From: Tubulanus polymorphus
Lineage: Eukaryota; Animalia; Nemertea
NCBI RefSeq assembly: GCF_964204645.1
Contig: NC_134030.1
Coordinates: 1,223,355-1,287,354 of the forward strand
Direction: 5' to 3'
DNA length: 64,000 nt
The notes under the pieces were generated by a model. It had not been told where the DNA came from. It was given only the letters and a program-made list of their open reading frames with translations, and ran no database searches. Made by a program: the position numbers and the translations under genes. Shown in pieces: positions 18,806 through 48,825 of this stretch (positions are counted from its first letter, which is position 1; the number at the start of each line of letters is the position of its first letter).

Positions 18806-18819
18806 GTTTTCTTTGTTTG

Positions 18820-19240: not shown

Positions 19241-19674
19241 TTTTTTTCTTCAGGAATTCAAGAACAAAGTAGTTGCATGTAGGTAGACACATTCATGAAT
19301 CACTCAGTGTCTTCCTGTCCCACCATAACTTCCTTGATCCTCATTACTCGGATTTATTCTCTGAACCACTTTTCCATGTTTGTTGTGGTTTGTTTGTTTT
19401 GATTTGCTGGTGGTTTAAGCATGCATGTTGAGGGAGCTCTATCAATCCAGGAACAGTCAGCTCACAAGCAGCCCCTGCCCAAAAGGTTTTGACATTATAT
19501 TTTCAAAAGCTCTAGTTGTTCTGTAGAACCGAGAGCGGAGCTCTGACTTGTTCCCCTCACTGCTGAGGTCTACTTTCTCTGATTCGCTGATTGGCTTCTC
19601 TTTGGTACATATTGGATGATCAAAAACTAGAAACTGTCATGCGTTTATTCATTTTGGTATATGTTAAAATTCTT

Positions 19675-20048
19675 TTACAGTAAAGGCATATTAGGCACAT
19701 CAAAACAAACCCGGAATTGTCCCCGAACGAAGTGGCTCCCTCCATTCTCCATCAGTATGCCGGGCCACCACCTCTACCTCTCGGGCCACTCGATCCCTCG
19801 CCAGCTTTTTGGGCGAGTGAACGAGTGACCGCCCGAGATACGGATGGAGGAGCAGGACCCGCACCATCCCCAGCCCCACCACCATCCCTCCTCGGCCTCT
19901 TCCTATTAATTCTTACCCCTTCCTCCTGATTGCCTTGATCAGCTGCGCCATCCGCAGGGGCAACTCTTGCCTCCCCTCCCTGAGGAGCCACGACGACCGC
20001 AACTTTTCTTTTCCTTTTCGTGCGAGTTTTTTTTGGCGGTGGTCGTGT
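19675..20048 (-). pseudogene. Frameshifted copy of the last coding exon
   Basis: Acceptor ctctttacag, then TRPPPKKTRTKRKRKVAVVVAPQGG...RKRPRRDGGG; a frameshift gives QKAGEGSSGPRGRGGGPAY*. Confidence 0.85.
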
Positions 20049-20340
20049 CTGTAAAGAGAAAAAAATGAACAATAAGTATTTAGTATAATACACCTATGTG
20101 CGTATAATACACCTATGTGAGTCCTTCGCTATTAAACACATAGAACTGTGGAACTGGATCCCGAGGCTAATCTAAATGCGCGCAATTGAGTCCAAGTGCA
20201 ACTAAAGCACACAACTGCGGATCAGATAAATCATTGGTAGATTCACTTGTAAAATATCTCGCTAAGAACAAACTAAAAACTGTAGAATGTTGTTGAAACT
20301 GTTGTGTGTTATTCATTTGGGTATATGTTATATTTGAATT

Positions 20341-20990
20341 TTTTTCAGTGAAGGCATATTAGGCGCACATGAACGTCTCATGCGTTCAAGGCATATCCCT
20401 TCACTGAAAGAATATTCTTTAGATCAGTTAACAAATCCGGAATTGTCCCCGAACGAAGTGGCTCCCTCCACTCTCCATCAGTATGCCGGGTCACCACCTC
20501 TACCTCTCGGGCCACTCGATCACTCGCCAGCTTTTTGACGAGTGACCGCCCAAGATACCGATGGAGGAGCAGGAGGAGCAGGACCCGCACCATCTCCAGC
20601 CCCACCACCATCCCTCCTCGGCCGCTTCCTATTTATCCCCTCCCCTTCCTCCCGATTACCTTCGTCAGCCGCACCATCCGCCGGGACCACTCTTGCTCCT
20701 CCTCCCTGCGGAGCCACGACGACCGCAACTGGTACTTTTCGGTTTCTCTTGGTTTCCCACCATCTTTCAAAAGAGAACTATCGATATATCATTAGCTACA
20801 AGGAAACTTTTCAGAAACTTTTTCAGGTCATTCTTTCTTGTATTATTAGCATTTGATTCTCTATATATCGTCAGAACATGGACTCAGAGTGTTTCTTTAA
20901 TGGTTAAGAATGTCTCTTTAACCAACATCCCCCTAGCCTGCTTCCTACATATCCCTTCCCTTTCCTCCTGATTACCTTTGATCCCCACTG
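20341..20990 (-). pseudogene. Second copy of the last exon (deletion/frameshift) plus an older diverged fragment
   Basis: ORFs 20520-20717 and 20378-20611 match 47379-47714 in two frames; ~20925-20990 reads KGNQEEREGICRKQARG versus EGNREEGEGINRKRPRR. Confidence 0.85.
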
Positions 20991-24824: not shown

Positions 24825-24987
24825 CACTTTCTTCCGGTCCACTTACTTCCGCGTTTGTGATTTGCATACAAGTAGTTTGAATGTTAAATGTATTAAGCCG
24901 CGTGTTGATTGGTTGAGGTCAGTGCGGTTTACTGAACGATGACCAGCTGTCAGCTGATCGAATCATTCGTTTCACAGACATTACGAC
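24825..24987 (+). promoter_or_regulatory. Putative promoter and non-coding first exon of the orphan gene
   Basis: ETS-like cttccgg 24831 and acttccg 24845, octamer atttgcat 24860, CHR-like tttgaa 24876, inverted CCAAT 24907, gtaagt donor at 24988; a homologous exon sits upstream of the MPKA exon in the - strand paralog (~18104-18190). Confidence 0.65.
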
Positions 24988-25609
24988 GTAAGTATATTTT
25001 ACATCTTTGATCAAAAATTGTAGTGTAAAAAAACTCCAAACTAAGGCCTCTATAAATGATCGATTGACTTTAAATGATTACTTTAGCACAGCTCTTGTAG
25101 ACAATGATTAGGTGTCATAGTAGTTTAGCTCGAAAGTGCACATATAAGGTTAATTTTCATCCCTTATTTAGAGACCGAGGTATTGAGCGTCCATTTCAGC
25201 CCTTAAAACATCATCAACCTACCTCAAACTGACTGTTTTTAAATCCAGCAATAGTTACCTAACTATTGACTCATCATGGATTCGATTCAAAAACAATTTT
25301 AGTGATCATAGTGATTCGAAACGTTTGAATTTTTGAAAAACACGAATGCTAAACGACGGATCCGGACTTCGATTGCGGCCCAATGGCAGAGTTGATTTTC
25401 TTATTTGGAATTTGAAGATATAAATCACTGAAATCAATTGGTTTTCTCAACCAAAATTAAAATTAAGAAGAATTTAGGATGGAGATGTTTGATTTTCATT
25501 TTGTCTAAAATGCCGACTTAAAAATTAATTCAATTGAATCAAATTAATGAATTCATCATTTCACGATATTATAGATAATCAAAATGTGAATATGAAATCA
25601 CCTTTTCAA

Positions 25610-27350
25610 TCGCTGTTTTTGGGTAAGATCGCAGTTTTTAGGTAAGATCGCAGTTTTTAGGTTAGATCGCTGTTTTGAGGTTAGATCACCGTTTTTGGTT
25701 AGATTGCTGTTTTGTGTTAGATCACTTTTTTGTGTTAGATCGCTGTTTTGTGTTAGATCGCAGTTTTTAGGTTACATTGCAGTATTTGGGTTAGACCGCA
25801 GTTTTTTGTTAGATCGCAGTGTTTAAGTTAGATCGCTGTTTTGGGTTAGATCACAGCTTTTGTGTTAGATCGCTGTTTTAGGTTAGATTGCAGTTTTTAA
25901 GTTAGATCGTTGTTTTTAAGTTAGATTGCTGTTTTGGGTTAGATCACAGTTTTTGTGTTAGATCACAGTTTTTGGGTTAGATCGCTGTTTTGGGTTAGAT
26001 CACAGTTTTTGTGTTAGATAGCTTTTTTTAGGTTAGATTGCTGTTTGTGGGTTAGATCGCTGTTTTAGGTTAGATCACAGTTTTTGGGTTAGATCGCTGT
26101 TTTGGGTTAGATCACAGTTTTTGTGTTAGATCTGCTGTTTTTGGGTTAAATTGCTGTTTTTATGTTAGATCATTGTTTTTTGTGTTAGATCGCAGTTTTT
26201 AGGTTAGATCGCAGTTTTTGTGTTAGATCGCATTTTTGTGTTAGATCACTGGTTTTTTGTTAGATCGCAGTTTTTAGGTTAGATCGCTGTTTTTAGGTTA
26301 GATCGCTGTTTTGTGTTAGATTGCTGTTTTTAGGTTAGATCGCTGTTTTGTGTTAGATCGCTGTTTTTAGGTTATATCGCAGTTTTTGTGTTAGATCGCT
26401 GTTTTTGTGTTAGATAGCAGTTTTTAGGTTAGATCGCCGTTTTGGGTTAGATCAGTTTTTGTGTTAGATCGCAGCTTTTAGGTTAGATTGCTGTTTTTAG
26501 GTTAGATGCCTGTTTTTCTGTTAGATCCCTTTTTTTTCTTAGATCGCAGTATTTAGGTTAGATCGCTGTTTTTGAGTTAGATTGCTGTTTTTGAGTAAGA
26601 TCGCTGCTTTTGAGTTAGATCAATGTTTTTGGGTTAGATCGCTGTTTTTGGGTTAGATCGCTGTTTTTGGGTTAGATCGCTGTTTTTGGGTTAGATCGCT
26701 GTTTTTGAGTAAGATCGCTGCTTTTTGAGTAAGATCGCTGCTTTTTAGTTAGATCGATGTTTTTGGGTTAGATCGCTGTTTTTGAGTAAGATCGCTGCTT
26801 TTTAGTTAGATCGATGTTTTTGGGTTAGATCACTGTTTTTGGGTTAGATCGCTGTTTTTGTGTTAGATCGCTGTTTTTGTGTTAGATCGCTGTTTTTGGG
26901 TTAGATCGCTGTTTTTGTGTTAGATCGCTGTTTTTGGGTTAGATCGCTGTTTTTAGGTTAGATCGCTGTTTTTGTGTTAGATCGCTGTTTTGGGGTTAGA
27001 TCGCTGTTTTTGGGTTAGATCGCTGTTTTTGGGTTAGATCGCTGTTTTTGGGTTAGATCGCTGTTTTAGGTTAGATCGCTGTTTTTGAGTAAGATCGATG
27101 TTTTTGGGTTAGATCGCTGTTTTTGGGTTAGATCGCTGTTTTTGTGTTAGATCGCTGTTTTTGGGTTAGATCGCTGTTTTAGGTTAGATCGCTGTCTTTG
27201 GGTTAGATCGATGTTTTTGGGTTAGATCGCTGTTTTTGGGTTAGATCGCTGTTTTTGGGTTAGATCGCTGTTTTTGGGTTAGATCGCTGTTTTTGTGTAA
27301 GATCGCTGTTTTTGGGTTAGATCGCTGTTTTTGGGTTAGATCGCTGTCTT
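25610..27350. repeat. 18-19-bp satellite (gggttagatcgctgttttt), ~90 copies
   Basis: Tandem units; more homogeneous in the 3' half. Confidence 0.98.
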
Positions 27351-27405
27351 TGTGTTTTTGTCAATCATCATATCAAGATTTGCAATCCCAGTTGCCTTCA
27401 AGTTT

Positions 27406-28596
27406 CATATAGAGAATTAGTGGATGTGGTGTCCCTGGAACCCTACATGCACCATATAGAGAATTAGTGGATGTGGTGTCCCTGGACCCCTACATGCAAC
27501 ATATAGAGAATTAGTGGATGTGGTGTTCCTGGACCCCTACATGCACCATATAGAGAATTAGTGGATGTGGTGTCCCTGGACCCCTACATGCACCATATAG
27601 AGAATTAGTGGATGTGGTGTCCCTGGAACCCTACATGCACCATATAGAGAATTAGTGGATGTGGTGTCCCTGGACCCCTACATGCACCATATAGAGAATT
27701 AGTGGATGTGGTGTCCCTGGACCCCTACATGCACCATATAGAGAATTAGTGGATGTGGTGTCCCTGGACCCCTACATGCACCATATAGAGAATTAGTGGA
27801 TGTGGTGTCCCTGGACCCCTACAGGCACCATATAGAGAATTAGTGGATGTGGTGTCCCTGGACCCCTACATGCACCATATAGAGAATTAGTGGATGTGGT
27901 GTCCCTGGACCCCTACATGCACCATATAGAGAATTAGTGGATGTGGTGTCCCTGGACCCCTACATGCACCATATAGAGAATTAGTGGATGTGGTGTCCCT
28001 GGACCCCTACATGCATCATATAGAGAATTAGTGGATGTGGTGTCCCTGGACCCCTACATGCACCATATAGAGAATTAGTGGATGTGGTGTCCCTGGACCC
28101 CTACATGCACCATATAGAGAATTAGTGGATGTGGTGTCCCTGGACCCCTACATGCACCATATAGAGAATTAGTGGATGTGGTGTCCCTGGACCCCTACAT
28201 GCACCATATAGAGAATTAGTGGATGTGGTGTCCCTGGACCCCTACATGCACCATATAGAGAATTAGTGGATGTGGTGTCCCTGGACCCCTACATGCACCA
28301 TATAGAGAATTAGTGGATGTGGTGTCCCTGGACCCCTACATGCACCATATAGAGAATTAGTGGATGTGGTGTCCCTGGACCCCTACATGCACCATATAGA
28401 GAATTAGTGGATGTGGTGTCCCTGGACCCCTACATGTACCATATAGAGAATTAGTGGATGTGGTGTCCCTGGACCCCTACATGTACCATATAGAGAATTA
28501 GTGGATGTGGTGTTCCTGGATCCCTACATGCACCATATAGAGAATTAGTGGATGTGGTGTCCCTGGACCCCTACATGCACCATATAGAGAATTAGT
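27406..28596. repeat. 47-bp satellite in inverted orientation, ~25 copies
   Basis: Reverse complement of the 16588-17859 unit. Confidence 0.98.
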
Positions 28597-28667
28597 TCAC
28601 TGAACCAGAATAAGACTGACTGATATATTTTCAAATGATTTAATATTTTTACTTGTTTTTCTAGATA

Positions 28668-29905
28668 ATGCCAAAAGCTTTAAAGAAAACCCGGGGAGCG
28701 GGCCCCTCACATTCAAGCCCGTATAATAAAGTAAGTACAAATTTACTGCTTCCATGCTTATTTATTCATCCCATACTTAGTATTTTGTACCCCTGGGTCC
28801 AGTTTCACAAAAAGGATAAACGCCTTAATCGATTTAAGATAAACTGAATTAATGAAGAAATTAAATCGATTTAAGAGTTAAACCTGTTTGTGAAACTAGG
28901 CCCTGAATTGCATCTAGAATGAAAAAAAGAAAAAAAAATATTGAATATAACGTTGGTGAAATATTTCTGGATCTTTCTGGATTTCTGCTCAATGCATCGT
29001 TTAGTAAAATATCGATATTCTCTAAAAGTAAAGATATAAGAATAAAAATATTGTATTGAATCGTGATTAGTTACTGTATGCGCTGCTAGTTGTTGCCCAA
29101 CCCATAGCCTCATTTCTCTCCATTCTAAATTTGCATTGTTTAACATTGTCTGGTCGCTATGGAAACTATTTATTTAAGTTTCTTTGTTGTATCCATGGCA
29201 ACAGTAACGTTTAGGTAGTGGCACCAATTATGGGTCCCAACGTTCCCATGGCGATACATGAGAACATTTATCCTATTTTTGACCTTCATGACGTAAGATG
29301 GTAGTGAGTCGATGACGTCATTTTCGTCTCACCACTAATGAAAAAAAAAATGAAATGAAAAAAAAGGAAGAAATCGTTAGAATTACGTTTATAAAATTTT
29401 TCTGGATCGGCTAAATGTATTGTTCCATTAAATATCGACATTCTCTAAAATTATAGGCATCAATATCAAAATGATGATACAGCAGACTCCGCTTAACTCT
29501 GTTCTATTTGGACCATTAATTAACCGAATACCAACTTTTTAAAATTTTAGGATTTTAACTTTAAGGATCAGAAAATGTGTATGCAATTTCAACCGGGTAC
29601 CGAGTAGGGTGGCCGAGTCTACTGTAGTCTGCTGCCCCCTCGAATCCATTACCTTATTATCTCTAAATTTGCATTGTTTGACCTCGTCTGGTTGCTATGG
29701 AAACTATTTAGTTATATCAGGAACGGTTTTTTCGAGGTAACCAGTGGCAACATTTAACAGGCGTGTCCGTCCTAGAGATAAACTGTCTGATTTCACAGCC
29801 ACATCCGTCCTGGAGATAAACTGTTAGATAAACTCTGATTTCGCGTCTGTCCTATTTCTTGTCATTGTATGAATATGTTTTCTCTTTTATAGGGTACAGC
29901 GCAGC

Positions 29906-29936
<31 letters not shown>

Positions 29937-32900
29937 GCAACAACAACAACAAAAATTCAATATTTCTATGTCGGGAATAGACGTAAGTTATCGTAAACGC
30001 CTGTTTGAAGTCATCATTCTTGAGCTTGAAACCGAAATTTATATTATAGAATATTAAACCCTGCTTCTGCTACTGACAGGTAATGTCCGTCATACATTAC
30101 TGCATCGTCAAATCTATACCAGGGTGCACCCAGGCAGATCGTTCGCATCATCACATGCAAAGGGCTGATTATTTTGGAACCCAGTTTTTATCAGCTGGAA
30201 CATTCTGCACATTCGACCATATTGATTGATAGCCCGTTATAGACGAGTGGAGAAAAACTGAAAAACCAGTTCGGAAAAACTTCGATTGATTTCACTCACA
30301 TTTACAGAAATTTGGTCCGACCCCAAAACCATTTACTTACACTATACAAATCAGATCAGGTTTTTAACATTGTCTTTGATTGTATTTTCAGTTTTTGCCG
30401 ACAACGCCACCGAGTGGTGTACCGCCTTCTACACCGGTAAGTGATAACTATTTTCTAATAAATCACGCTTATTTCAATCTGTAATTTGAAAATAGAGGGT
30501 AGTAGCTGTTATGTATAAATTATGCTAATTAGGAATAAATTCAAATTCGATTAAGTCTCATCATCGTAGAAGTCATATATTAATGATGCTATCTCTAAAG
30601 TTGTCATTTAAATTAAGTGTTATATTTACTACTTCATTTGCTTCATGACCCAAAAACCTCTACTATATAACTACTGGTTTTGTTCTAATCTTGGAGAATT
30701 TGCTGCAAAATTTACTTATCATTTGTTTAACAGTTTTTATTGAAAACCTGAATCAGTGATACATGCATTCATGAATATCCATCTAATATTTTGTTTTATT
30801 TTATCTTTACAGGATTTATCACCGATACAGCACATGGACGTAAGAGATTAAACATTGATCTTGAATTTTAAGTTCAAACTAATTTATTTTTTTATCTCAC
30901 TCGGGACTATAGTTATTGCGTTCACTTTGCGTCCAGTTGTCTCGGCTAGTTTTTGATTTATCGTGTTGATAATTGGTTTATATACTCAAACTCAAAATAT
31001 CGGCGCAATTGGAATTAAGATGGCGCACTTGTATGTCCATTTTTTTCCCCGGCAAAATTAGCACTTTAGCAGATTTTAAGGATCAATTCTGTTGTTATAT
31101 TACATTGAAATCAGAGTTTAATATATATCGGTATAGAGCAGGTTTTTGCTCTAGTTATAAATAAAGTTATAAATAATCTCATGACATGTTCTGTATATGT
31201 GTAGTGAGTTTCAATGTCTTTGGTTCCTTTTAAACCAGGGGGAGTTAAATTTGAAAATGTCAGATCGTCGAGCATTTCAGACCGCTTCCAAAGTGGGTCC
31301 CTGCACCCCTAGTTATACCGTTAATATTTTAATAATATATTGATATACCATACATTGATATCGGTCTTGTAATTGGATCAACAACCATGAGATCAAAACA
31401 CAGCAAATATGAACCTGCTGTGAATCAATAGATTTGTGATAAATGTAATGAAATTGTTATTTTTCATATTGACTTTTTGAGTTAAGGGTCTGTTGTATAA
31501 GAGTATTTGGTCTCGCGTGTCAATGTATGATATCAATCTGTATTTCCTCGTTCCAATGTTTAAAAGGTGTTCGTCACCTTATATTAATAAACTACTTTTA
31601 CCGTTAGATGGCGCCATAAGTGTGATATTTGATTTATGGGATACCCGCAAAACCAGCTATTCCACCAGATGGCGCAACGAGTAGTAGGTCGTTCGTTGTC
31701 AGAATTAGTTCATTTTCGATGAACTTTGAACTGGTTTGAAGAAGAAATACTTTCATTCTTCTACTCTGATATCGGTTTAGTTTTCATTAATAATTGATTC
31801 ATTTAAGAGAACAATTCATTCAGATTTAATTGAAATGTACAAGAAAATCGAACGCAGACGACCAACTATTTACTAGCGACACCTGGTGGATCCTCGCCTG
31901 CCATAAGTGGAATCCTCGATTGCTACAGTAAGACTGCGGGTATCCCATTGTTTGGCGTGTGAAGTAAAGTAAAGTTAGAAAACGGATGTTTAACTTTGTT
32001 GTGAAACGAAAGCGTTTTGGAGATTTTTAAACCAATCAAATCAATATTTTGATATTACGCTTGAAACCCTTCCCACTCATATTCTACTTACTAAGTATAT
32101 ATTCTTGTTTCCGTGGAAATCATGGTGAGTGGCGCCATCTATACAGTGGAGTTAGCTTTATAAATCGAGCTTGCTTCGACAAGTGGCTCCATCTATTCCC
32201 TAATACTGAAGCGAGGTAACCAGCAGCGCCCTCATATACAGGAAATGAACGCCTATCAAGTTTAACAATGCACGGTGTATTGACCACAGCGACAGGTGAT
32301 AATTATATCAATGTTGCTTAGCTATTGCCATAGACAGGTCCGTAGCGTTTGACTGGACCAGAACGGGGCCCCCTAACCAAAACAAATTTTGAAAACGTGC
32401 CCAGATAAATTGCCTCTGGGAGATTGATTTAACGAGGTTTTGATTAAATGAACAAATTTTAATATTTGTAAGTTTAACATTTCTGTTTTTAATTTTTCTT
32501 TGCGAGGAACTGAATTTTCGAACCCCCCCGAACCGCCTCAAGCTACGTTCCTGATATAGTGCTAGCTATACCTGAATACTTTTCTCTTATTGAAATTGTC
32601 TAAAAAACCAGCACCTTGAACTAATGAACGTCATAATGAAAATGTTTAAAAATTCAACCGTTAATGAATTTGACTAATGTATTTTTTTTATTTTCATTTC
32701 TAGCATCAGTTTGCCTCAGAGGCAAGGTCGCCGTCGCTTAATGTAAGTATCAGTGACGCCCTCAATCTCACATGCCTCACTTCCCTCCTAATGTAACCAT
32801 TTTTATGAAATTCCTCAAGAAAATATATACTAGTAATCTTAGAATACACGTTTTTGTACCCAGACCCCTTCATTCTACTGAACTACCGTGTAATAAGTGC

Positions 32901-35900
32901 CTGTTGTGTTCATTTTCTGTTGCATTGATTTATATATTATTTCTATTTACAGTTGTCAAACAACAGCAGCAGCAGCAACAGCAGCAGCAGCGCACCCCTC
33001 CCGCCGGAGACGCCTCCCGACTTGCAAGCAAGAAGTAAGTTCAGTCTTCAAATACAATTTCAACGCATTCAATTTTTTGTATGGCGTTAAAACGGTTAAA
33101 GTTGTGACTAGTTTTCATAACTCCGTGACGTCATATTTCCATCGAGTACCGGACCCTTTCCTATGTTTTTTGCCAATTTGGATTGAATGATCGCCAGCGG
33201 TTTTTCTATACGACCCGGCTCTGCTGTATTGCATTTAGCCATCCTTTTTCTTGGCGTTTTTATAAGAAGGTGTTTGATTTTGTCTCTAAGGGATTTAGGA
33301 ATTTAAGAGACACTTGTACTTTCTATGCAGTGAGTTTGTTCTGTTTTTGTTCCCTCGTGAATTTTATTTTTGTTTGAATCAAATCAAATCAGTGCATCTT
33401 TCTTGAATTGCGTGTATGTTATAATATTATGTAAGTTATAACGTTAAAATATCTGTTATATTTAAACCGAATATTTAATTGTTGTATTTTGAATGCGATA
33501 ATGCCGCTACCTGCTAAAGTCCAGCGTCGTCATCGTGAGGGATGCGGTCATCTGTTCGGGCCCTGATTACGTTCTGTGTTCATCCTGTTGGGCTACATCG
33601 GGCGTTATATGAGTTAATCCTTCCTCGACTTGCGGATTGTGGTCGGAAGATCTATGGGTTCGGGCCGATAAGTCCCGGAAACAGAAAGTACAGTTTCTGC
33701 CGATGTGCCCATTGATGTCTCTATTTCAGAACATCACAGCGGTCGCCGGCTGTACAAGCACGGTCGGCTTCCCAACTCCTTTCTCTGAGGAGGATCGCTG
33801 GTTCTCTAGTAACGGTCAGTCACCAGTCAATCAACGGTTCAGCTGGTTCAGTTTCCCAGGTATCGGCGCGCGACAGTCGGGATACCTGCACAGGAACTCA
33901 GGTCCGGTCCGGGCTACTCCGAGCACCGGTCCGGTCCAGGCCTCACTGGGTAATGAACATCTGGTCCGGTCCGGGCGGCTTCGAGCACCGGTCCGGTCCA
34001 GGCATCACCAGATACTGAACATCCTGTCCAGTCAGCTCCGTGCACCGGTCCGGTCCAGGCATCACCGGGTACTGAACATCTGGTCCGGTAGCTTCGAGAA
34101 CTGGTCCGGTCCAGGCATCACCGGATACTGAACATCCTGTCCGGTCAGCTCCGTGCACCGGTCCGGTCCAGGCATCACCGGATACTGAACATCTGGTCCG
34201 GTCAGCTTTGAGAACCGGTCCAGGCATCACTGGGTACTGAACATCTGGTCCGGTAGCTTCGAGAACTGGTCCGGTCCAGGTATCACTGGGTACTGAACAT
34301 CTGGTCCGGTAGCTTCGAGAACTGGCCTGGTCCAGGCATCACCGGGTACTGAACATCTGGTCCGGTCAGCTCTGTGCACCGGTCCGGTCCAGGCATCACC
34401 AGTTACTGGTCCGGTCCGGGCAGCTTTGAGCACCAGTCCATTCCAGGCATCACTGAGTACTGAACATCCAGTCTGGTCCGGTCCAGGCAACACCGGGTAC
34501 TGATCATCCAGTCCGGTCCGGTCCAGGCATCACTGGGTACTGAACATCTGCTCCGGTAGCTTCGAGAACTGGTCCGGTCCAGGCATCACCGGGTACTGAA
34601 CATCTGGTCCGGTAGCTTCGAGAACTGGTCCGGTCCAGGCATCACCGGGTACTGAACATCTGGTCCGGTAGCTTCGAGAACTGGTCCGGTCCAGGCATCA
34701 CCGGGTACTGAACATCTGGTCCGGTAGCTTCGAGAACTGGTCCGGTCCAGGCATCACTGAGTACTGAACATCCAGTCTGGTCCGGTCCAGGCATCACCGG
34801 GTACTGATCATCCAGTCCGGTCCGGTCCAGGCATCACCGGGTACTGAACATCCAGTCTGGTCCGGTCCAGGCATCACCAGTTACTGAACATCCAGTCCGG
34901 TCCGGTCCAGGCATCACTGGGTACTGAACATCCAGTCCGGTCCGGTCCAGGCATCACCGGGTTCTGATCATCCAGTCCGGTCCGGTCCAGGCATCACCGG
35001 GTACTGAACATCCAGTCCGGTCAGCTCCGTGCACCGGTCCGGTCCAGGCATCACTGGGTACTGAACATCCAGTCCGGTCCGGTCCAGGCATCACTGGGTA
35101 CTGAACATCCAGTCTGGTCCGGTCCAGGCATCACCGGGTACTGAACATCCAGTCTGGTCCGGTCCAGGCATCACTGGGTACTGAACATCCAGTCTGGTCC
35201 GGTCCAGGCATCACCGGGTACTGAACATCCAGTCTGGTCCGGTCCAGGCATCACTGGGTACTGAACATCCGGTCCGGTCCGGTCCGGTCCAGGCATCACC
35301 GGGTACTGAACATCCAGTCCGGTCCAGTCCAGGCATCACCGGGTACTGAACAGGGTTCGTCGCGGTGCTTGAAAAGCTTGAAATGGCTTGAATTTGAAAA
35401 ATACTACTCAAGCGCTTGAAAACAGCTTGAAAATAGATCGAAAGCTTGAAATAATTATTTTTGACTTGAAATAAAAAGTTATGGCTTGAAATGCTTGATT
35501 ATCACAAATTTTCTTCTTCGCGAATTTTTTTCGATGAAATCGCAGACAGAATATGTTCTTGAGTTGTTTCTACGCGTGCGTCATGTTTTAGGCATCAATA
35601 AAGAAATTAATTGAATTGTATTGAATCGCTATGAGGCTCTTGTGGTGAAACTCTACGGTGTCTGGAGACATGAACATACGGGGAAATTTCAGTCATGCAT
35701 GTTATCGAGCATTGATGTAAAATGGCATTGAAATCCCACACCAGGAGTGAGAGCCATGTTGAAGGCACCGCGACCTAGTCAAAGTCATTGAACATTACAA
35801 ATTTCGTATTAGGCCATACAAAAATCAAGGTCTGTTTGCCGTCATCCGACCGACCCGACTTCAAAGGTACCCAGTGGAAACTTTTTTCTTGGATTCATTG

Positions 35901-38900: not shown

Positions 38901-41900
38901 GGTTAATGGGCGGCTTCATTGGACCTGAAAGATGTCAGGTTCCTATTCACCCGAAATCTCATCAATTTCACAGAATGAAGTGGAAACGCCGCCAGTTCCA
39001 GTTCAGGTCTCTTCCAGTCGGCCTCAGTACAGCCCACGCCCTGGGTATTTACCAGCTTGGGTCAAGTCCAGAAGGTACACTACACTCCAGGGCTGGGTTT
39101 CATAGATATGGAAGAAAAATAATTCCAGGGAACATTTTGAAATTTGTCAGTTATAACCATGGTTTCTCATTGTTAGTATGGTGGTTGAGGATTTATCCCT
39201 TTGGATAACTTTGATACTCAGTCTATGAAACCGGGTCCTGGAGTATTTGTCTGTTGGTTTACCTCGACGACTGGTTACTAGTACCAAACTCGACTATAGA
39301 ATGTCAGGAGGCGGTGACCGCTGTCGATCGCTGTCGTAGACTTAGTTCACCAGTTCCGCGTAAACTAAGTAAAATCTCACTTGATGCCGTCCCAACAGTT
39401 CACATCTCCGGATCAGCACGGTCTTTCCGTCCATGGCTCGAGTAGCCAAACTTCAAGAAGCGTAGTTACCACAAACGAGAGGACAGCTAGTTATCGGTGA
39501 CGCCTGTGGCTAAATGCAATACCGCACTGCCAGGGGTCGTATCTCTGGCTATCTACACATTCAGAGAATATTAACTAAAACCATAGGAAAGGGTCAAGCA
39601 CTACTCCGAAAAAAAACTAATTTTATTTCCAAAAAATTATGATATTATATGGATTGCATGCTGTGTGGAAGAAGTTTTCAAAATTATTTAGGAGCTTATT
39701 ATAATTTGAATGCATGAATTGAGAGCAATTTGAAATGTGTTGATATCCGAAAGTGTCTCCATTGACTTCACTCATTCACCTGATGAAGCTTCTATACATT
39801 AGTACCCAAAGCTTGTGTGTCAAATAAACTAGTTACACGTCCTATAAAGTACTACTTGTCTCGTTATATATTCTAAACCCCAGTTAACAATTCCAGTAAG
39901 TCAGGTTTAGGGAATAGATATTTAAACCTTGAGATGATACCGATGTGATACAATTCCAGTAAGTCAGGTTTAGGGAATAGATATTTAAACCTTGAGATGA
40001 AACCGATGTGATACAATTCCAGTAAGTCAGGTTTAGGGAATAGATATTTAAACCTTCAGATGATACCGATGTGATACAATTCCAGTAAGTCAGGTTTAGG
40101 GAATAGATATTTAAACCTTGAGATGATACCGATGTTATACAATTCCAGTAAGTCAGGTTTAGGGAATAGATATTTAAACCTTGAGATGAAACCGATGTGA
40201 TACAATTCCAGTAAGTCAGGTTTAGGGAATAGATATTTAAACCTTCAGATGATACCGATGTGATACAATTCCAGTAAGTCAGGTTTAGGGAATAGATATT
40301 TAAACCTTCAGATGATACCGATGTAATACAATTCCAGTAAGTCAGGTTTAGGGAATAGATATTTAAACCTTGAGATTAAACCGATGTTATACAATTCCAG
40401 TAAGTCAGGTTTAGGGAATAGATATTTAAACCTTGAGATTAAACCGATGTAATACAATTCCAGTAAGTCAGGTTTAGGGAATAGATATTTAAACCTTCAG
40501 ATGAAACCGATGTGATACAATTCCAGTAAGTCAGGTTTAGGGAATAGATATTTAAACCTTGAGATGAAACCGATGTGATACAATTCCAGTAAGTCAGGTT
40601 TAGGGAATAGATATTTAAACCTTCAGATGATACCGATGTGATACAATTCCAGTAAGTCAGGTTTAGGGAATAGATATTTAAACCTTCAGATGAAACCGAT
40701 GTGATACAATCCCAGTAAGTCAGGTTTAGGGAATAGATATTTAAACCTTCAGATGAAACCGATGTGATACAATCCCAGTAAGTCAGGTTTAGGGAATAGA
40801 TATTTAAACCTTCAGATGATACCGATGTAATACAATTCCAGTAAGTCAGGTTTAGGGAATAGATATTTAAACCTTGAGATGATACCGATGTGATACAATT
40901 CCAGTAAGTCAGGTTTAGGGAATAGATATTTAAACCTTCAGATGAAACCGATGTGATACAATCCCAGTAAGTCAGGTTTAGGGAATAGATATTTAAACCT
41001 TGAGATGAAACCGATGTGATACAATTCCAGTAAGTCAGGTTTAGGGAATAGATATTTAAACCTTGAGATGATACCGATGTTATACAATTCCAGTAAGTCA
41101 GGTTTAGGGAATAGATATTTAAACCTTCAGATGAAACCGATGTGATACAATTCCAGTACGTCAAGTTTAGGGAATAGATATTTAAACCTTCAGATGATAC
41201 CGATGTAATACAATTCCAGTAAGTCAGGTTTAGGGAATAGATATTTAAACCTTGAGATGATACCGATGTGATACAATTCCAGTAAGTCAGGTTTAGGGAA
41301 TAGATATTTAAACCTTGAGATGAAACCGATGTAATACAATTCGATTAAGTCAGGTTTAGGGAATAGATATTTAAACCTTGAGATGAAACCGATGTGATAC
41401 AATTCCAGTAAGTCAGGTTTAGGGAATAGATATTTAAACCTTGAGATGATACCGATGTGATACAATTCCAGTTAGTCAGGTTTAGGGAATAGATATTTAA
41501 ACCTTGAGATGATACCGATGTGATACAATTCCAGTAAGTCAGGTTTAGGGAATAGATATTTAAACCTTGAGATGAAACCGATGTGATACAATTCCAGTAA
41601 GTCAGGTTTAGGGAATAGATATTTAAACCTTCAGATGATACCGATGTAATACAATTCCAGTAAGTCAGGTTTAGGGAATAGATATTTAAACCTTGAGATG
41701 ATACCGATGTGATACAATTCCAGTAAGTCAGGTTTAGGGAATAGATATTTAAACCTTGAGATGATACCGATGTGATACAATTCCAGTAAGTCAAGTTTAG
41801 GGAATAGATATTTAAACCTTCAGATGATACCGATGTAATACAATTCCAGTAAGTCAGGTTTAGGGAATAGATATTTAAACCTTGAGATGATACCGATGTG

Positions 41901-44900
41901 ATACAATTCCAGTAAGTCAGGTTTAGGGAATAGATATTTAAACCTTGAGATGATACCGATGTGATACAATTCCAGTAAGTCAGGTTTAGGGAATAGATAT
42001 TTAAACCTTGAGATGAAACCGATGTGATACAATTCCAGTAAGTCAGGTTTAGGGAATAGATATTTAAACCTTCAGATGATACCGATGTAATACAATTCCA
42101 GTAAGTCAGGTTTAGGGAATAGATATTTAAACCTTCAGATGATACCGATGTGATACAATTCCAGTAAGTCAGGTTTAGGGAATAGATATTTAAACCTTCA
42201 GATGAAACCGATGTGATACAATTCCAGTAAGTCAGGTTTAGGGAATAGATATTTAAACCTTCAGATGATACCGATGTAATACAATTCCAGTAAGTCAGGT
42301 TTAGGGAATAGATATTTAAACCTTCAGATGAAACCGATGTAATACAATTCCAGTAAGTCAGGTTTAGGGAATAGATATTTAAACCTTCAGATGAAACCGA
42401 TGTGATACAATTCCAGTAAGTCAGGTTTAGGGAATAGATATTTAAACCTTCAGATGAAACCGATGTGATACAATCCCAGTAAGTCAGGTTTAGGGAATAG
42501 ATATTTAAACCTTCAGATGATACCGATGTGATACAATTCCAGTAAGTCAGGTTTAGGGAATAGATATTTAAACCTTCAGATGAAACCGATGTGATACAAT
42601 CCCAGTAAGTCAGGTTTAGGGAATAGATATTTAAACCTTCAGATGATACCGATGTGATACAATTCCAGTAAGTCAGGTTTAGGGAATAGATATTTAAACC
42701 TTCAGATGATACCGATGTGATACAATTCCAGTAAGTCAGGTTTAGGGAATAGATATTTAAACCTTCAGATGAAACCGATGTGATACAATTCCAGTAAGTC
42801 AGGTTTAGGGAATAGATATTTAAACCTTGAGATGATACCGATGTAATACAATTCCAGTAAGTCAGGTTTAGGGAATAGATATTTAAACCTTGAGATGATA
42901 CCGATGTTATACAATTCCAGTAAGTCAGGTTTAGGGAATAGATATTTAAACCTTGAGATTAAACCGATGTAATACAATTCCAGTAAGTCAGGTTTAGGGA
43001 ATAGATATTTAAACCTTCAGATGAAACCGATGTGATACAATTCCAGTAAGTCAGGTTTAGGGAATAGATATTTAAACCTTGAGATTAAACCGATGTAATA
43101 CAATTCCAGTAAGTCAGGTTTAGGGAATAGATATTTAAACCTTCAGATGATACCGATGTCATACAATTCCAGTAAGTCAGGTTTAGGGAATAGATATTTA
43201 AACCTTGAGATGAAACCGATGTGATACAATTCCAGTAAGTCAGGTTTAGGGAATAGATATTTAAACCTTCAGATGAAACCGATGTGATACAATTCCAGTA
43301 AGTCAGGTTTAGGGAATAGATATTTAAACCTTCAGATGATACCGATGTGATACAATTCCAGTAAGTCAGGTTTAGGGAATAGATATTTAAACCTTCAGAT
43401 GAAACCGATGTGATACAATTCCAGTAAGTCAGGTTTAGGGAATAGATATTTAAACCTTGAGATGAAACCGATGTTATACAATTCCAGTAAGTCAGGTTTA
43501 GGGAATAGATATTTAAACCTTGAGATGAAACCGATGTGATACAATTCCAGTAAGTCAGGTTTAGGGAATAGATATTTAAACCTTCAGATGATACCGATGT
43601 AATACAATTCCGGTAAGTCAGGTTTGATATTTAAACCTTGAGATGATACCGATGAATTTAGCAATTTTGAATGAATTAAACCAATATGAGATTTCGATCC
43701 TAAGAATATTGGAAGCTTGTGTTTAACGTTACTAAATATTAATATTATATAAAGCTAGAAGGACACGAGCGTATCCATTTTTCGCCCGATCGCGACGATT
43801 AAATTCGCCGGTGAATTTATACGCCCGATACGAGCGGGTACCGATCTATCTATAAATCGGCCATCACGGTGATTTCGTCGCCCGCCGACATTAAACATGT
43901 TCGATATTTACGCCGGTGTTCGGGTCACTTGTTAATTCGCTCGGCTTGTCGGCAAGCTTAAAAAGATTTAGAAAAAACTAGAAATTCTCATTCCTGAATG
44001 AACTGGATTCATCTGGGTTCAGTTTCATGAGACACAGTTCAAACTGCTCTTGAATTTGAGTTTGTAATTAATGTATGTGATTATAATGAATTGTATTTTT
44101 GTTTTACAGCTTTGGCATTTCGGTTAAGTCGTGCGTTCCGGCGGGAGGAGTTCGTCAGAATATTTCTACCGGAGTGTAAGTAGTTTAACTATTTTCATAC
44201 AATATCATTTAGTGTGACGTGTGTTACTGATTCAGGCACGGATCCAGGAATGTTTCCAAGACGGGGTTCATAAAAATGCTGACTAAAATCTCTAATAATA
44301 GCCGGGGCCTATACGGCATATTTTTTGGCCAAACATAAGGCCTTTTTTTAATAGCATGGTTTGGTTGCTCCCAAAATTTGAAGAAACATAAAATAAAAAA
44401 GAATTAGAAAAAAATTTTTTTATTCCTGTCTGTGAAACAAATTCAGTGAAAAACCGAGCAAAAAAGATTTTTCACCTCGGCCGAATGAGAATCCTGGATT
44501 GAACGATGAAACAATTGAAAAACGCGAAGTTCTTTTTTGATCGCAGTGTGCAGAATTCAAACTTTCCAAGAATCATTTGTTCGGACATATGTATATTGCC
44601 CTATTGACAGTTCCCTCTTCCTTCTAAAAGTGATTTTATCTCACTGAGGGAATTTTTAAAAAATTTTCTCTGAAATGATATGGTAGCGTTTTTTTTTTTG
44701 CTTTAAAAATTTTTTGGTAGCCGATCAGCGGGGTCACGACCCCTGAAACCCTCCCTGGATCCGCGCCTATGATATCTCCTCAAAATCTAATAAAAACTTT
44801 CAATGAATTAATGCTGTAATGACGATATGTAGCCATCTGTCTATTTGAATGCATTTGCAAAAAGACAAAAAGAAATAGTAGCAGAATTTTGGCTAAAAGT

Positions 44901-47714
44901 TTAGAATACCCAAATTCAACATTGCTTGCAGCAGACGGTATTTCCGCCATTTTGGTTAACAGGGGATTCCCCCCTCCGGTACTTCCCATGATCAATAGTG
45001 TCTATGACGCGTTGCGTACGGAATGCCATGGAATTCCCTCACATGATTTATGATAATAATGTTTACTTGCATTCTGATTGGTTAAAATCGCGTGTAGTTT
45101 GAACGTAGGCAATGTTTACATTTGTAACGTCACCGGCGAGTCGCTGACATTAACGTAGTCATTGAGTTAACATTATCTTGCACTGAATGGTGATATCAAT
45201 CGCATTCATTTTATAAATATTTTGAATATGAATTTGTTTTTATATATCAACTGCGAGTAACAGTGTTACGCTATTGAGTCTTAAGAGACAGCCTTTATGG
45301 ACCTTATTGGTTGTTATAACTCACAAGCTGACTGAGTTAGCATTCTGGATCCGTCAGATTAGTTACTTCTAGAAAATATGTTAGTCACATTTTCTGACTA
45401 TATTCTGGAAAACAGTGGAAGCTTGTATCCACCCTAGATTAGAACCAATCAGAATAGAACCAATCAGAATACACTATTTTACAGAAAATGTATTTATGAC
45501 AATTGCGTAAGGTTTTAGTAAAATAGTGTTTTTTCTCGAGTAGTTGCCGAAGAAGCATAAAAATTTGATTCAATTTCATTCAGATTTAAACAAACAAATC
45601 GAATTTCATTTCATTCAGCGCAAACTTCAAATCTAATTAAAATTTTGTTCAGTATGAATAAGTTGCAAATCATTGAGAGGAAAAAATAATTAATTGTGTT
45701 ACTTAAAAAAATCACAATTGTACTGTGTTTATCAAAACAGGAGACCACAGGACCTTTGGTCCTCTAGTATTCTTTTCCTAGTTATTCCAAAAACACTAAA
45801 ACAGTCCAATCAGCGATCGCTGCCAGACCAACACGATTACATTGAAATCAAACTTAAGTAACATCAGGCGCCCCCTGTTGGAATAATATTCATAGCCGTA
45901 GCATCGAAACCATTCGACTTGTTGTTTAATGTATTTCTCTCTATTTTTATTTTACAGTGATGAACATTTTAGAAGAATGTCCGTTTGGGGACTTGGTGGG
46001 GGAATTCAAAAGAAACTTGGTTCCCGATAGGATACCACCACCGGTTAATCCTATGTCGCCCGCTGCTGCCCCTCCCCCACGTCCATTAAATTCGCCTCAG
46101 CAGCGGCCTGTCAGACAGCCGCCCCCGGCCGCCACTCGTTCGTCAGACAGAGTCCGGGGACGGCTGTTTGAAGGAGATCTGACGGAGGTAAGAATCTTTA
46201 TTTGTTTTCATATTTTATTCAGGATATCAGTTGAAGTTCAGCAAATAAATTACCAGACCTGTAAACAGAAGAGTAGTCATAAATTTCCATTTGCGGGTAA
46301 AACCCCATAGTCGAAAACCTTCGGTTATTGATCTATATCTGCTTAAGACCAATGGTTGTACACACGAGTGCGAAAACTTATCGCTCAAACTTTGATTGTA
46401 TCCATGGTAACGCGTACAGTATACTATGCGTGACTTACCGTTTCCTATCACTGGAATACAATACTGTTTTTGACCATGAGCGCCATCTGCGGCGGTCATA
46501 ACGGACTGACTGGTGATTGGCTGAAATGCTCGTCTACCGTGGTGACGATTATTCGGTGTTACACGTGCAGCAGACACGTCTCTGAATATCTAACATTTGA
46601 TTGTTGTAACTCATCGGGAAAAATATGTTTATGAGTCGATTTTTTGTCGAAATTTTGTTCGGCAGAAAATTGGCTGCGTACGTCAAGAAGGCGGCTGATA
46701 TTTGTATCGTGTGACCCCTCGTCCCGGTAATATGCCGACCCACGTACACCTGAGACCAGTTGCATAGTCAGAGCTTAGAATTAAGACCGTTTTAAGACCA
46801 ACTTAGTTCTATAGCCAATCTAATAACTTAAGACCAGTCTTTAGATTTAAGACCACTTTTGGACTTAAGTCTTGACCATGGAATCGGCCCCAGATGCTTA
46901 TTCCGCTGTATTGGATGCTGACGTGCTCGTGTCTTCCAGCAATGTTGTTATTCACCAAAAATATCATGTTTTGTTCGAATAACACAATTCATCTGAGTCT
47001 GGGTTTAACGGATGACACGTTCAAACAGAACTACGAAATCAATATCAGAAGTCCTTTTATATTGAAACGGTCCCAGAAGTCCCTGTTATAATGGGTACTT
47101 TTTCAAAAAAAGTAACGAGAACTCCGATGGCTTTCCGTATCGGTAAAAACTAACTATTTCTATGAGCGTCACTCGTAGATTTACCGAAACGCCACCTTGT
47201 GACACGATATCCTAACTACGTATAGGTGTTTTATTTGCTGAATCGCTGGTTTCTCATTCTCATTTTTTATACTTGTGTTTAATTTTATACTAAACAAATT
47301 TTTCACTTTTTCTCTTTACAGACACGACCACCGCCAAAAAAAACAAGAACAAAAAGGAAAAGAAAAGTTGCGGTCGTCGTGGCTCCGCAGGGAGGAGGAG
47401 CAAGAGTGGTCCCGGCGGATGGTGCGGCTGACGAAGGTAATCGGGAGGAAGGGGAGGGGATAAATAGGAAGCGGCCGAGGAGGGATGGTGGTGGGGCTGG
47501 GGATGGTGCGGGTCCTGCTCCTCCTGCTCCTCCATCCGTATCTCGGGCGGTCACTCGTTCACTCGCCAAAAAGCTGGCGAGTGAACGAGTGGCCCGAGAG
47601 GTAGAGGTGGTGGCCCGACATACGGATGGAATGTGGGAGGAGCGGCTTCGTTCGGGGACAATTCCGGATTTGTTAACCGATTTGAAAAATATTCTTTCAG
47701 TGAAGGGATATTAG
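28668..47714 (+). CDS. Orphan gene, 9 coding exons, ~344 aa: join(28668-28730,29893-29982,30392-30436,30813-30839,32704-32742,32953-33034,44110-44175,45958-46187,47322-47714)
   Basis: All introns GT-AG with pyrimidine tracts; intron phases 0,0,0,0,0,1,1,0 give one 1035-nt ORF: MPKALKKTRGAGPSHSSPYNK|GTA(Q)17KFNISMSGID|FLPTTPPSGVPPSTP|DLSPIQHMD|HQFASEARSPSLN|LSNNSSSSNSSSSAPLPPETPPDLQAR|TLAFRLSRAFRREEFVRIFLPE|LMNILEECPFGDLVGEFKRNLVPDRIPPP...VRGRLFEGDLTE|TRPPPKKTRTKRKRK...NILSVKGY*; paralogous exons show synonymous and conservative changes. Confidence 0.78.
28796..28902. mobile_element. MITE, PIF/Harbinger-like
   Basis: TIRs ggtccagtttcacaaa / tttgtgaaactaggcc with 3-bp ctg duplication on both sides. 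Confidence 0.75.
29153..29751. promoter_or_regulatory. Intronic cluster of RFX X-box-like and CRE motifs
   Basis: gtcgctatggaaac 29153, gtatccatggcaac 29189, gttcccatggcgat 29242, gttgctatggaaac 29691, gtaaccagtggcaac 29737; tgacgtaa 29289, tgacgtca 29313. Confidence 0.45.
31636..31948. mobile_element. MITE-like element with CTCF-like motifs in its subterminal inverted repeats
   Basis: Perfect 14-bp TIR atgggatacccgca / tgcgggtatcccat; inner inverted pair tccaccagatggcgc / gcgacacctggtgga. Confidence 0.65.
33895..36870. repeat. GC-rich ~40-60-bp minisatellite (ccggtccggtccaggcatcaccgggtactgaacat...) inside the DIRS gag region, split by a DNA transposon
   Basis: Arrays at 33895-35350 and 36559-36870. 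Confidence 0.95.
35351..36558 (+). mobile_element. Internally deleted hAT-type DNA transposon with 5-bp TSD (hAT5-like)
   Basis: TIR cagggttc / gaaccctg; TSD ctgaa at 35346-35350 and 36559-36563; subterminal gcttgaaa repeats; zinc-finger-like fragment MALKSHTRSESH at ~35722. Confidence 0.8.
37022..37255. repeat. 35-bp tandem repeat, ~6.7 copies
   Basis: gtcgagggaccgtttaggaagttcacgtctttcac. Confidence 0.95.
37310..38130. mobile_element. Insertion with internal ~162-bp tandem repeats, possibly a non-autonomous Helitron/Helentron-type element
   Basis: Three-plus units containing caagatggccgcc...gccattttg (37441, 37603, 37764); short inverted motif gctacc...ggtaagc at the 5' end; family assignment inferred from architecture only. 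Confidence 0.4.
39887..43654. repeat. 63-bp satellite, ~60 copies
   Basis: caattccagtaagtcaggtttagggaatagatatttaaacctt(g/c)agatga(t/a)accgatgt(g/a/t)ata. Confidence 0.99.
44233..44770. mobile_element. MITE, Harbinger-like, absent from the paralogous intron
   Basis: TIR aggcacggatccagg / cctggatccgcgcct; the empty site is visible at ~9410-9450 on the - strand. Confidence 0.8.
46750..46893. mobile_element. Short palindromic MITE
   Basis: Imperfect TIRs ctgagaccagttgcatagtc / gaccatggaatcggccccag; internal ttaagacc repeats. Confidence 0.7.
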
Positions 47715-48317
47715 GTGCCTTGAACGCATGAGTCGTTCATGCGCGCCTAATATGCCTTCACTGAAAAAAAATCAACTATAACATGTACCACATATTTTTT
47801 GATTTAATTTTAGTCCAATTCCACAATTATTTCGGCTTACAATAGTGTCAATTCAATTCTTTAAAGCCCAAAGCACCTTTTTGACTCAACATCCAGTATG
47901 AAGGTGGCCGGGAATCGGGCCTGTTTTCTTCCATTTTTGTATCCCGCCCAGCATACTGGTTGTTGACTCGAAAAGGTGCTCGCTCTGGGAGCTTATCAAA
48001 GGCAGGTGATGGGAAAGGTGCCATCACACACTCTCCTTTGATAAGTTTCCTAGAGTGTCACGGGCTTTAACGGGTTGAATTCACTATAATACCAATTTTC
48101 CAAAATCAATTTAATTTCTTTCAGGCCATTCTTTTTCCATGTTTTTCTGGTACATGTTATGGTTGATTTCCATTTTCGAAAATCCGGAATTGAAGCCGTT
48201 CGAAGTCGGGGGGATGGTGGTGGGGTTGGGTTAGTTTAGGGTTCCTCTCTGATTACCTTCTTTAGCTCATCATCCGTGCAGGTGGCGCTTGCTCTTCTAG
48301 CCGGTGTTCCCTGGGGT
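47382..48317 (+). other. ~930-nt nested fold-back RNA structure spanning the last exon (CDS + 3' UTR)
   Basis: At least 11 properly nested complementary segment pairs with G-U wobble on the + strand (see findings); closes just before AATAAA at 48344. Confidence 0.8.
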
Positions 48318-48329
48318 AAACATTTTAAA

Positions 48330-48825
48330 TTTAAAAAATCAAAAATAAAAAAAAAATTATAAAATCTTTAAAAATCTCATCTCATTTCATCCAATTTATT
48401 TATTTGCGGGTGCGATGCCTATCGCACCCATTCATGTCATCCATCAAAAAAAAAATTAAAACTAAAAACGAAAAAAAATATAAAAATTTAAAAAATCTCA
48501 TCTCATTTCATCCAATTTATTTGCGGGTGCGATTCCTATCGCACCCATTCATGTCATTCATCCAAAAAAAATAAAAAACGAAAAACGAAAAAAAAATATA
48601 AAAATTAAAAAAATCTCATCTCATTTCATCCAATTTATTTATTTGCGGGTGCGATTCCTATCGCACCCATTCATGTCATTCATCCAAAAAAAAATAAAAA
48701 ACTAAAAACAAAAAAAAAATATTAAAATTAAAAAATCTCATCTCATTTCATCCAATTTATTTATTTGCGGGTGCGATTCCTATCGCACCCATTCATGTCA
48801 TTCATCCAAAAAAAATTTAAAAACT
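48330..48825. repeat. ~122-bp tandem repeat x4, each with a perfect 9-bp GC-rich hairpin
   Basis: gggtgcgat-(t/g)cct-atcgcaccc at 48408, 48525, 48647 and 48769, between A-tracts. Confidence 0.92.

Follow-up and report, generated by a model that had tools for sequence, protein, structure and literature searches.

A repeat-buried nine-exon gene of the nemertean Tubulanus polymorphus and its probable membership in a lineage-specific, highly amplified family

Introduction

The described systems that come closest to the gene analyzed here are the micro-exon genes (MEGs) of schistosomes and the ampliconic or macrosatellite arrays of mammals (TSPY, DUX4/D4Z4) and Drosophila (Stellate/Su(Ste), and Dox with its hairpin RNA (hpRNA) suppressors). 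Our subject is a candidate gene of nine coding exons, several of them very small, spread over about 23 kb of repeats in the nemertean Tubulanus polymorphus. It lies on the forward strand of a stretch of 64,000 nucleotides (nt), positions 1,223,355 to 1,287,354 of contig NC_134030.1 in assembly GCF_964204645.1. This whole stretch is called the window, and positions are counted from its first letter.

MEGs are reported to be restricted to platyhelminths (PMC4350168). With the genes described there, the nemertean gene shares a series of tiny symmetric exons (63, 90, 45, 27, and 39 nt, all of phase 0-0), any of which, because of that symmetry, could be skipped without breaking the reading frame. 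It also resembles the MEGs of that account in being multi-copy and lineage-restricted and in having a variable, fast-evolving protein part whose splicing signals are nevertheless kept. However, we do not class it as a MEG, as its symmetric exons (1–5 and 7) make up 330 of the 1035 coding nt (32%), while exons 8 and 9 alone account for 623 nt (60%). Its product has no signal peptide, as judged by composition, and resembles a nuclear protein more than a secreted one. In addition, the gene belongs to a different phylum, and no sequence similarity was found.

The second comparison, with the ampliconic and macrosatellite arrays, is based on organization. As in those arrays, long tandem units each carry a complete gene and are of very high identity, and, as in the Stellate/Su(Ste) and Dox systems, related antisense or inverted sequence lies nearby that could, by analogy, give rise to silencing RNAs. 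The nemertean genes differ from all of these in having no homology to them, and in the unusually large size of both the repeated unit (30–36 kb) and the gene (~23 kb, with satellite-filled introns).

Results and Discussion

A nine-exon gene model that is conserved in diverged paralogues

Joining the nine exons produced an open reading frame (ORF) of 1035 nt with a single, terminal stop codon, encoding 344 amino acids (aa). The exon lengths and the frame are exactly those proposed in a reading made earlier from the letters alone (hereafter the sequence-only reading), which had also begun the gene at 24825 and described its surroundings as repeats; both of these points agree with the features reported below. 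All eight acceptors consist of a pyrimidine tract followed by (C/T)AG and all eight donors are GTAAG. In a strict scan for phase-0 exons with strong splice sites between 24 and 46 kb, four of the nine exons were recovered on the plus strand and none on the minus strand. Based on these features and the comparisons that follow, the locus probably represents a genuine gene that codes for a protein in nine exons, likely preceded by one 5' non-coding exon, between ~24.9 and 47.8 kb. It would be a single member of a lineage-specific family that has been highly amplified.

The copies of the gene were counted over the whole 268-Mb genome, in which they fall on contigs labelled C3, C6 (the window's own), and C8, with a sister subfamily on C8, C9, and C11. 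Most of the potential partners for comparison are 92–100% identical to the window gene, and their intactness therefore says little. For this reason two diverged copies on the minus strand of C8 were used, C8a (C8:15134600-15154999) and C8b (C8:16312300-16332299). Nucleotide similarity between the window and these copies is limited to short collinear patches, and nine such patches correspond to the nine exons and their adjoining intron flanks. The exons in C8a/C8b are 69, 45, 51, 30, 45, 61, 66, 233, and 393/387 nt long, so every difference in length from the window gene is a multiple of three. The phases are those of the window gene, and the two copies have intact ORFs of 330 and 328 aa. Integrity of the full nine-exon structure was checked in five copies, these three and two close ones (the next unit on C6 and one copy on C3), which are also intact (341 and 340 aa) and whose exons 2, 3, and 6 differ in length without loss of frame.

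The individual exons follow the same pattern. With an acceptor AG that ends at 28664, exon 1 probably begins at 28665, three bases ahead of its ATG. C8a/C8b have kept the ATG, the acceptor, and the GTAAGT donor, and the longer exon there stays in frame. Exon 2, which encodes polyglutamine (polyQ), has kept its acceptor, and it is in frame at its reduced C8 length as well as at 84 and 87 nt in the two close copies. The equivalent of exon 3 in C8a/C8b has a similar acceptor context and a GTAAGT donor, and it is 39 and 48 nt long in the close copies. Exon 4 is only 63% identical between the window and the C8 copies, yet the 50 nt of intron upstream of it are 94–98% identical. In exon 6, whose phase is the same in C8a/C8b, the peptide PPETPP..LQAR has been retained through synonymous changes, including AGA to CGT. 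Exon 7 is 66 nt in all copies examined, with five synonymous and four conservative changes relative to C8a. A 1-nt indel relative to the paralogue lies just 5' of its acceptor, and the stretch upstream is therefore intron. Three other conserved patches (29179-29259, 31202-31298, and 46467-46590) were considered as exons and rejected, as their indels are not multiples of three or they have no splice sites. The first of these lies in intron 1, contains two CCATGG palindromes, and is shared with the C8 copies.

Purifying selection is evident in the part of the gene where it can be measured. The ratio of non-synonymous to synonymous divergence (dN/dS, Nei-Gojobori) against C8a was 0.31 overall, 0.34 for exons 6–7, 0.37 for exon 8, and 0.155 for exon 9, at a synonymous divergence (dS) of 0.56. 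Over the C8 copies the ratio ranged from 0.28 to 0.37 for exon 8 and from 0.14 to 0.16 for exon 9. In exons 1–5, dS is saturated, and the coding status of these exons therefore rests on the kept ATG, phases, splice sites, and open frames and not on dN/dS. The 50-nt intron flanks of exons 1–7 are 64–98% identical between the window and C8a/C8b, compared to 41–83% for the exons themselves and ~55% for an unrelated alignment. The splicing signals of these exons are, at the level of sequence, better kept than the exons. Very small exons rely on intronic signals, as seen for vertebrate micro-exons, and the conserved flanks fit with splicing of the small exons here depending on them, as it would if the model is correct.

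The comparative evidence verifies the gene model, and from it we infer that the gene is transcribed and that its nine exons are linked in a single transcript. Several observations weigh against this interpretation. The saturation of dS in exons 1–5 is one, and another is that some of the in-frame length changes sit in trinucleotide microsatellites, which keep the frame without selection. The 5' halves of two more C8 copies, C8c and C8d, could not be traced. Contigs of sequencing runs covering 43700-48340 were of DNA type, with introns covered as well as exons, and one presumed RNA run gave no match on exons 7–9. Finally, the structure models of the product described below are of low confidence.

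The gene is one of about 33 loci in tandem arrays

The gene had been described in the sequence-only reading as an orphan. This is true insofar as nothing related turned up beyond this genome. The gene is not single, however, as it has ~33 loci and a sister subfamily of nine copies. Intact full-length exon 9 occurs in 34 copies genome-wide (18 on C6, 10 on C3, and 6 on C8), and an intact exon 8 adjoins 33 of them; patches for exon 1, exons 5–6, and exon 7 were collinear in 29 loci. On C6, 17 plus-strand copies are spaced 30–36 kb apart, or ~60 kb apart where there is an antisense cluster between them. The unit in the window measures ~36.5 kb, with 24104 aligning to 60646. The units are arranged head to tail, each with a complete gene, and are highly similar to one another (92–100% for the C6 and C3 copies, 98–100% in exon 9), which is the organization of an ampliconic array. 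Short-read contig depth over the gene is ~20–50 times that of a variable stretch at 48040-48340, a difference that fits with collapsed copies and is not a measure of copy number.

Each of the ~60-kb gaps in the C6 array contains scrambled fragments of exons 1–3 and 5–9, with intron flanks, all antisense to the genes. The window has one such cluster upstream of the gene and further antisense fragments downstream; the exon-9 copies among them are 90–95% identical to exon 9 in nucleotide sequence (Table 1). Inverted exon-9 copies that contain a stop are found ~10 kb 3' of many units, and at least seven other units are followed by an equivalent of the one in the window. In DNA contigs from two runs, position 47497 in exon 9 is joined back to 46142 in exon 8 across an identical insertion of 38 letters. 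This joint is a rearranged DNA copy in the sequenced individuals, probably one of the scrambled fragments, and not a splice. A further side observation was made on C8, where at G000:C8:15158588-15172302 the first 91 codons of exon 9 are repeated in tandem six times at intervals of 2.7 kb, in open frames of 136–145 aa, each with a fragment of codons 81–109 nearby. This is a derived mini-array, possibly of a chimeric gene.

If the gene functions as modelled, the ~33 loci in 30–36 kb tandem units would reflect either a demand for dosage or intragenomic conflict. Taken on its own, the second of these becomes a rival explanation, in which the family is a selfish or conflict-driven ampliconic gene, a germline driver or a participant in a dosage arms race, and the antisense clusters, the inverted exon-9 copy, and the hairpin described below would give rise to small RNAs that restrain it. 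The analogy is with Stellate/Su(Ste) and Dox/hpRNA of Drosophila (PMC11745323, bioRxiv 10.1101/2021.08.05.454923, PMC10618873). The near-identical tandem units on three contigs, the recurrence of an antisense cluster in every ~60-kb gap, and the repeated inverted exon-9 copies are what such a system would be expected to contain. However, antisense fragments may also arise simply because unstable arrays rearrange, and selection on the conserved half of the protein is purifying and not obviously diversifying. We therefore regard this explanation as possible, though unlikely.

A sister subfamily shares the 3' exons

Nine copies of a second subfamily, B, are distributed over C11, C9, and C8. Their exons 8 and 9 have 43–45% protein identity to those of the window's own family, A, with equal phases, and the two groups have in common the basic cluster after the junction, an RV.GRL.EG(D/E)L motif, and C-terminal motifs. 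The sole nucleotide similarity between them is in the last 35 nt of intron 7 and the acceptor. Upstream, subfamily B has many phase-0 micro-exons, with 16 strict candidates on the plus strand and none on the minus strand. In one subfamily B locus (G000:C11:2072000-2087000, ~1443-3117 of the joined stretch) a 48/36-nt micro-exon encoding the peptide (T/Q)KP(T/A)...IPAR recurs about every 320 nt. This is an exon–intron cassette that has been amplified in tandem inside the gene.

Gene ends, introns, and a hairpin at the stop codon

A block of sequence with the features of a core promoter precedes the gene (Table 1). It is 87–88% identical to the diverged C8 copies while its surroundings are unalignable. 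Because this conserved block is followed by a GTAAGT donor and an acceptor lies before the ATG of exon 1, the gene likely has a 5' non-coding exon at ~24.9 kb. On the 3' side, similarity to the C8 copies ends at 47789, and the first AATAAA in the window is at 48344. Neither AATAAA nor ATTAAA was found within 800 nt of the stop codon in C8a or C8b.

The repeats around the exons, described in the sequence-only reading, include large intronic satellites with units of 19, 47, 57, and 63 nt. More precisely, arrays of 19- and 47-nt units lie 5' of exon 1, and the 11-kb intron 6 has arrays of 57-, 35-, 161-, and 63-nt units together with a degenerate reverse-transcriptase-like stretch. A Pfam search with the other long ORFs of the window, the reverse-transcriptase-like ORFs of intron 6 included, gave no match. 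Intron 7 carries a GC-rich motif, GGCGCCCCCTGTTGG, of which the window has a single occurrence, against 0.01 expected by chance, and its reverse complement resembles the core motif of CTCF, making it a candidate site by likeness. In intron 8, an element of ~85 nt (46793-46876) had a contig depth of ~227,000 in a DNA run, compared to ~700 around it, and many loose ends. This is a very high-copy short repeat that is similar to a miniature inverted-repeat transposable element (MITE) or a short interspersed nuclear element (SINE).

The last codons and the TAG lie in the 5' arm of a near-perfect hairpin with a stem of ~30 bp that is almost invariant among family A copies. Subfamily B has a hairpin of other sequence, with a stem of ~40 bp, that begins in the last codons and encloses the stop (z -9.5). 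That a hairpin is present at an equal place with a different sequence in both subfamilies argues for a function, and it could have a role in 3'-end formation, as a Dicer substrate, or in translational control. It is not of the type found at the 3' end of replication-dependent histone mRNAs, which has a 6-bp stem and a 4-nt loop and does not approach the length of the stem seen here or its overlap with the stop codon. An Rfam scan of the whole window found no family at gathering score, the histone 3' element included.

In its broadest form, the conflict explanation would make the array a self-contained system of conflict and regulation, with ~33 sense genes for a fast-evolving nuclear protein interleaved with antisense exon copies, and with a 30–40-bp hairpin around the stop codon of each mRNA, acting either through a small-RNA pathway that would titrate the family or with the hairpin in place of polyadenylation. 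We consider this quite doubtful; if true, it would be the first ampliconic system of the driver/suppressor type described in a spiralian.

Table 1. Features of the window, with positions counted from its first letter
Feature	Position	Strand	Remarks
Antisense fragment cluster	9042-20755	-	Fragments of gene exons, 84–95% identity
Putative core promoter and 5' non-coding exon	24876..24987	+	Inverted CCAAT box (ATTGG at 24908), TTTGAA at 24876; GTAAGT donor at 24988
Further intronic/upstream satellites	25609-27356, 27406-28596, 33903-35352		Tandem Repeats Finder
Coding exon 1	28668..28730	+	63 nt, phase 0-0; ATG at 28668
Coding exon 2	29893..29982	+	90 nt, phase 0-0; polyQ from CAA/CAG microsatellite
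Coding exon 3	30392..30436	+	45 nt, phase 0-0; proline-rich, T-P sites
Coding exon 4	30813..30839	+	27 nt, phase 0-0; 30 nt in C8a/C8b
Coding exon 5	32704..32742	+	39 nt, phase 0-0; 45 nt in C8a/C8b; TCTAG acceptor and GTAAGT donor conserved
Coding exon 6	32953..33034	+	82 nt, phase 0-1; polyserine (polyS) microsatellite, PPETPP
63-nt satellite, 59 copies	39887..43625		Within 11-kb intron 6; Tandem Repeats Finder
Coding exon 7	44110..44175	+	66 nt, phase 1-1; basic and hydrophobic helix-like segment
GC-rich motif GGCGCCCCCTGTTGG	45867..45881	+	Intron 7, 77 nt before exon 8; conserved in C8a, C8b, C8c
Coding exon 8	45958..46187	+	230 nt, phase 1-0; proline-rich linker, ends in conserved RV.GRL.EG(D/E)L motif
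Coding exon 9	47322..47714	+	393 nt, phase 0-0; 130 codons and TAG; basic clusters, Gly/Ala/Pro stretch, C-terminal ~55-aa module
Near-perfect 72-nt hairpin	47695..47766	+	5' arm carries last codons and TAG; free energy (dG) -45.9 kcal/mol, z -9.8
Antisense fragments	55995-57909	-	Scrambled pieces of gene exons
Inverted exon-9 pseudo-copy, stop-containing	57352-57670	-	94.7% nt identity to exon 9

A basic, mostly disordered product with a conserved C-terminal part

The predicted protein has an isoelectric point (pI) of 10.4, a grand average of hydropathy (GRAVY) of -0.84, and 45 Pro, 34 Arg, and 31 Ser among its 344 residues. Its N-terminus is basic and not hydrophobic, and the highest 19-residue Kyte-Doolittle mean is 0.91. 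By composition, there is no hydrophobic segment and no signal-like start. The sequence features that had been listed in the sequence-only reading are all present in the translation: polyQ and polyS tracts, LPTTPPSG, PPETPP, VRGRLFE, the basic clusters KKTRTKRKRK and RKRPRR, and a C-terminal helical stretch. The N-terminal third (~115 aa, from the six small exons) is of low complexity, with polyQ, polyS, and serine/threonine-proline (S/T-P) sites, and varies between copies by in-frame indels. Its proportion of non-synonymous differences (pN) between copies is 0.04, compared to 0.002–0.004 in the rest of the protein, and the C-terminal part is nearly invariant.

Searches for homology and structure used single exons as queries, or exon 9 together with the exon 9 of subfamily B, and the joined 344 aa were used for frame, composition, paralogue alignment, and dN/dS. 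With queries of this kind there was no sequence or fold relative, in line with the statement in the sequence-only reading that no known family was recognizable. Pfam gave nothing above cut-off for exons 2, 6, 7, 8, and 9, and phmmer returned no matches for exon 9 against 1.84 billion representative proteins. A profile of the two exons 9, searched within its length limits against a clustered set of 5.8 billion proteins, gave low-complexity noise or nothing. The best match in a profile search of the PDB had an E of 0.19, and a protein atlas gave no usable match.

AlphaFold2, supplied with the paralogue alignment, predicted four short helices in the last 55 residues, with a predicted local distance difference test (pLDDT) score of 54 for exon 9 and 64 for the last 62 aa. 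Foldseek found no match to the model in the PDB, and a shape search of the atlas gave template modelling (TM) scores of at most 0.51, to unrelated bacterial proteins. With VIA-align the best Z was 7.0, to an NLR helical subdomain, followed by 6.0–6.5 for MLLE, values too low to be meaningful for helical bundles. The last 62 residues, as modelled, can be superposed on MLLE/PABC-type bundles (6h7a, 3ntw, and 7pze), which are peptide-binding domains of 4–5 helices, with a Z of 6.0–6.5 and a root-mean-square deviation of 2.0–2.7 Å over 57–60 residues, but this likeness is only a lead, as sequence identity is 4–10%, the pLDDT of the model is 64, and NLR helical subdomains score alike.

Together, these properties suggest a basic, Pro/Arg/Ser-rich, and mostly disordered protein, of which the C-terminal two thirds (exons 7–9) are under purifying selection and comprise the RV.GRL.EG(D/E)L motif, a basic cluster of the nuclear-localization type, and the predicted four-helix module of ~55 aa. 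A nuclear-type product, as the sequence-only reading had also proposed, is plausible given the pI, the conservation of the KKTRTKRKRK cluster, and the lack of a visible signal peptide or hydrophobic segment, and such a protein would probably be associated with chromatin or RNA.

The more specific proposal in the sequence-only reading, that the protein is a cell-cycle-regulated nuclear substrate of a cyclin-dependent kinase (CDK), with cyclin docking and phosphodegrons, is harder to maintain. The protein does have eight S/T-P sites, six of which are conserved in C8a/C8b, PPETPP is conserved, and the basic cluster fits with nuclear import. In addition, an inverted CCAAT box and a TTTGAA element, both of which occur in many G2/M promoters, are present in the putative promoter. 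However, none of the eight sites fits the full CDK consensus [ST]Px[KR], and S/T-P richness is typical of any disordered region rich in Pro and Ser. The supposed docking motif failed as such, because VRGRLFE has no strict R-x-L, the same site is RGRLS in the C8 copies and DGRLW in subfamily B, and the Phe is not conserved. The six [RK]xL matches elsewhere in the protein are at about the level expected by chance for its composition, and the two promoter elements are short and unspecific. For these reasons we think it improbable that the product is a CDK substrate of this kind.

The small exons and the age of the copies

It could also be asked if the 3' part alone, exons 7–9 or 8–9, is the gene, and the small N-terminal exons are conserved non-coding elements or belong to another transcript. 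We consider this very improbable, even though exons 1–6 of the window are close to background in their identity to those of the C8 copies and long ORFs are present in exons 8 and 9 only. The in-frame ATG at 45960 in exon 8 is ATA, GTA, or ATC in the C8 copies and GAA in subfamily B; it is therefore not the start codon, and the frame must enter from upstream exons. Exon 7 begins in phase 1 behind a conserved acceptor, and the conserved protein stretch PPETPP..LQAR continues into it from exon 6. The ATG of exon 1 is kept, and the six upstream exons keep their acceptor, donor, phase, and open frame in the five copies examined. A related candidate model, in which exons 1–7 are chance AG..GT exons in microsatellites and the real gene consists of exons 8–9 starting from the ATG at 45960, was rejected by the paralogue alignments.

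That the array is decaying or was never functional, with ORFs intact merely through the youth of the copies, as the little informative intactness of the C6 and C3 copies would allow, is scarcely credible, since C8a and C8b are still intact at a dS of ~0.56–0.60 with a dN/dS of ~0.3, and subfamily B is still open, with exon phases unchanged, at 43–45% protein identity.

Conclusions

Overall, our data support that an unannotated gene buried in repeats can be validated by comparison of its paralogues alone. The micro-exon family to which it probably belongs would encode disordered proteins of a nuclear type, in contrast to the secreted products of the schistosome MEGs. The family is of interest for the splicing of tiny exons, as intron flanks are more conserved than the exons they adjoin, for the biology of ampliconic arrays, in which antisense debris recurs here at regular places, and for the control of multigene families by small RNAs, for which a stop-codon hairpin conserved in structure, though of differing sequence, may be relevant.

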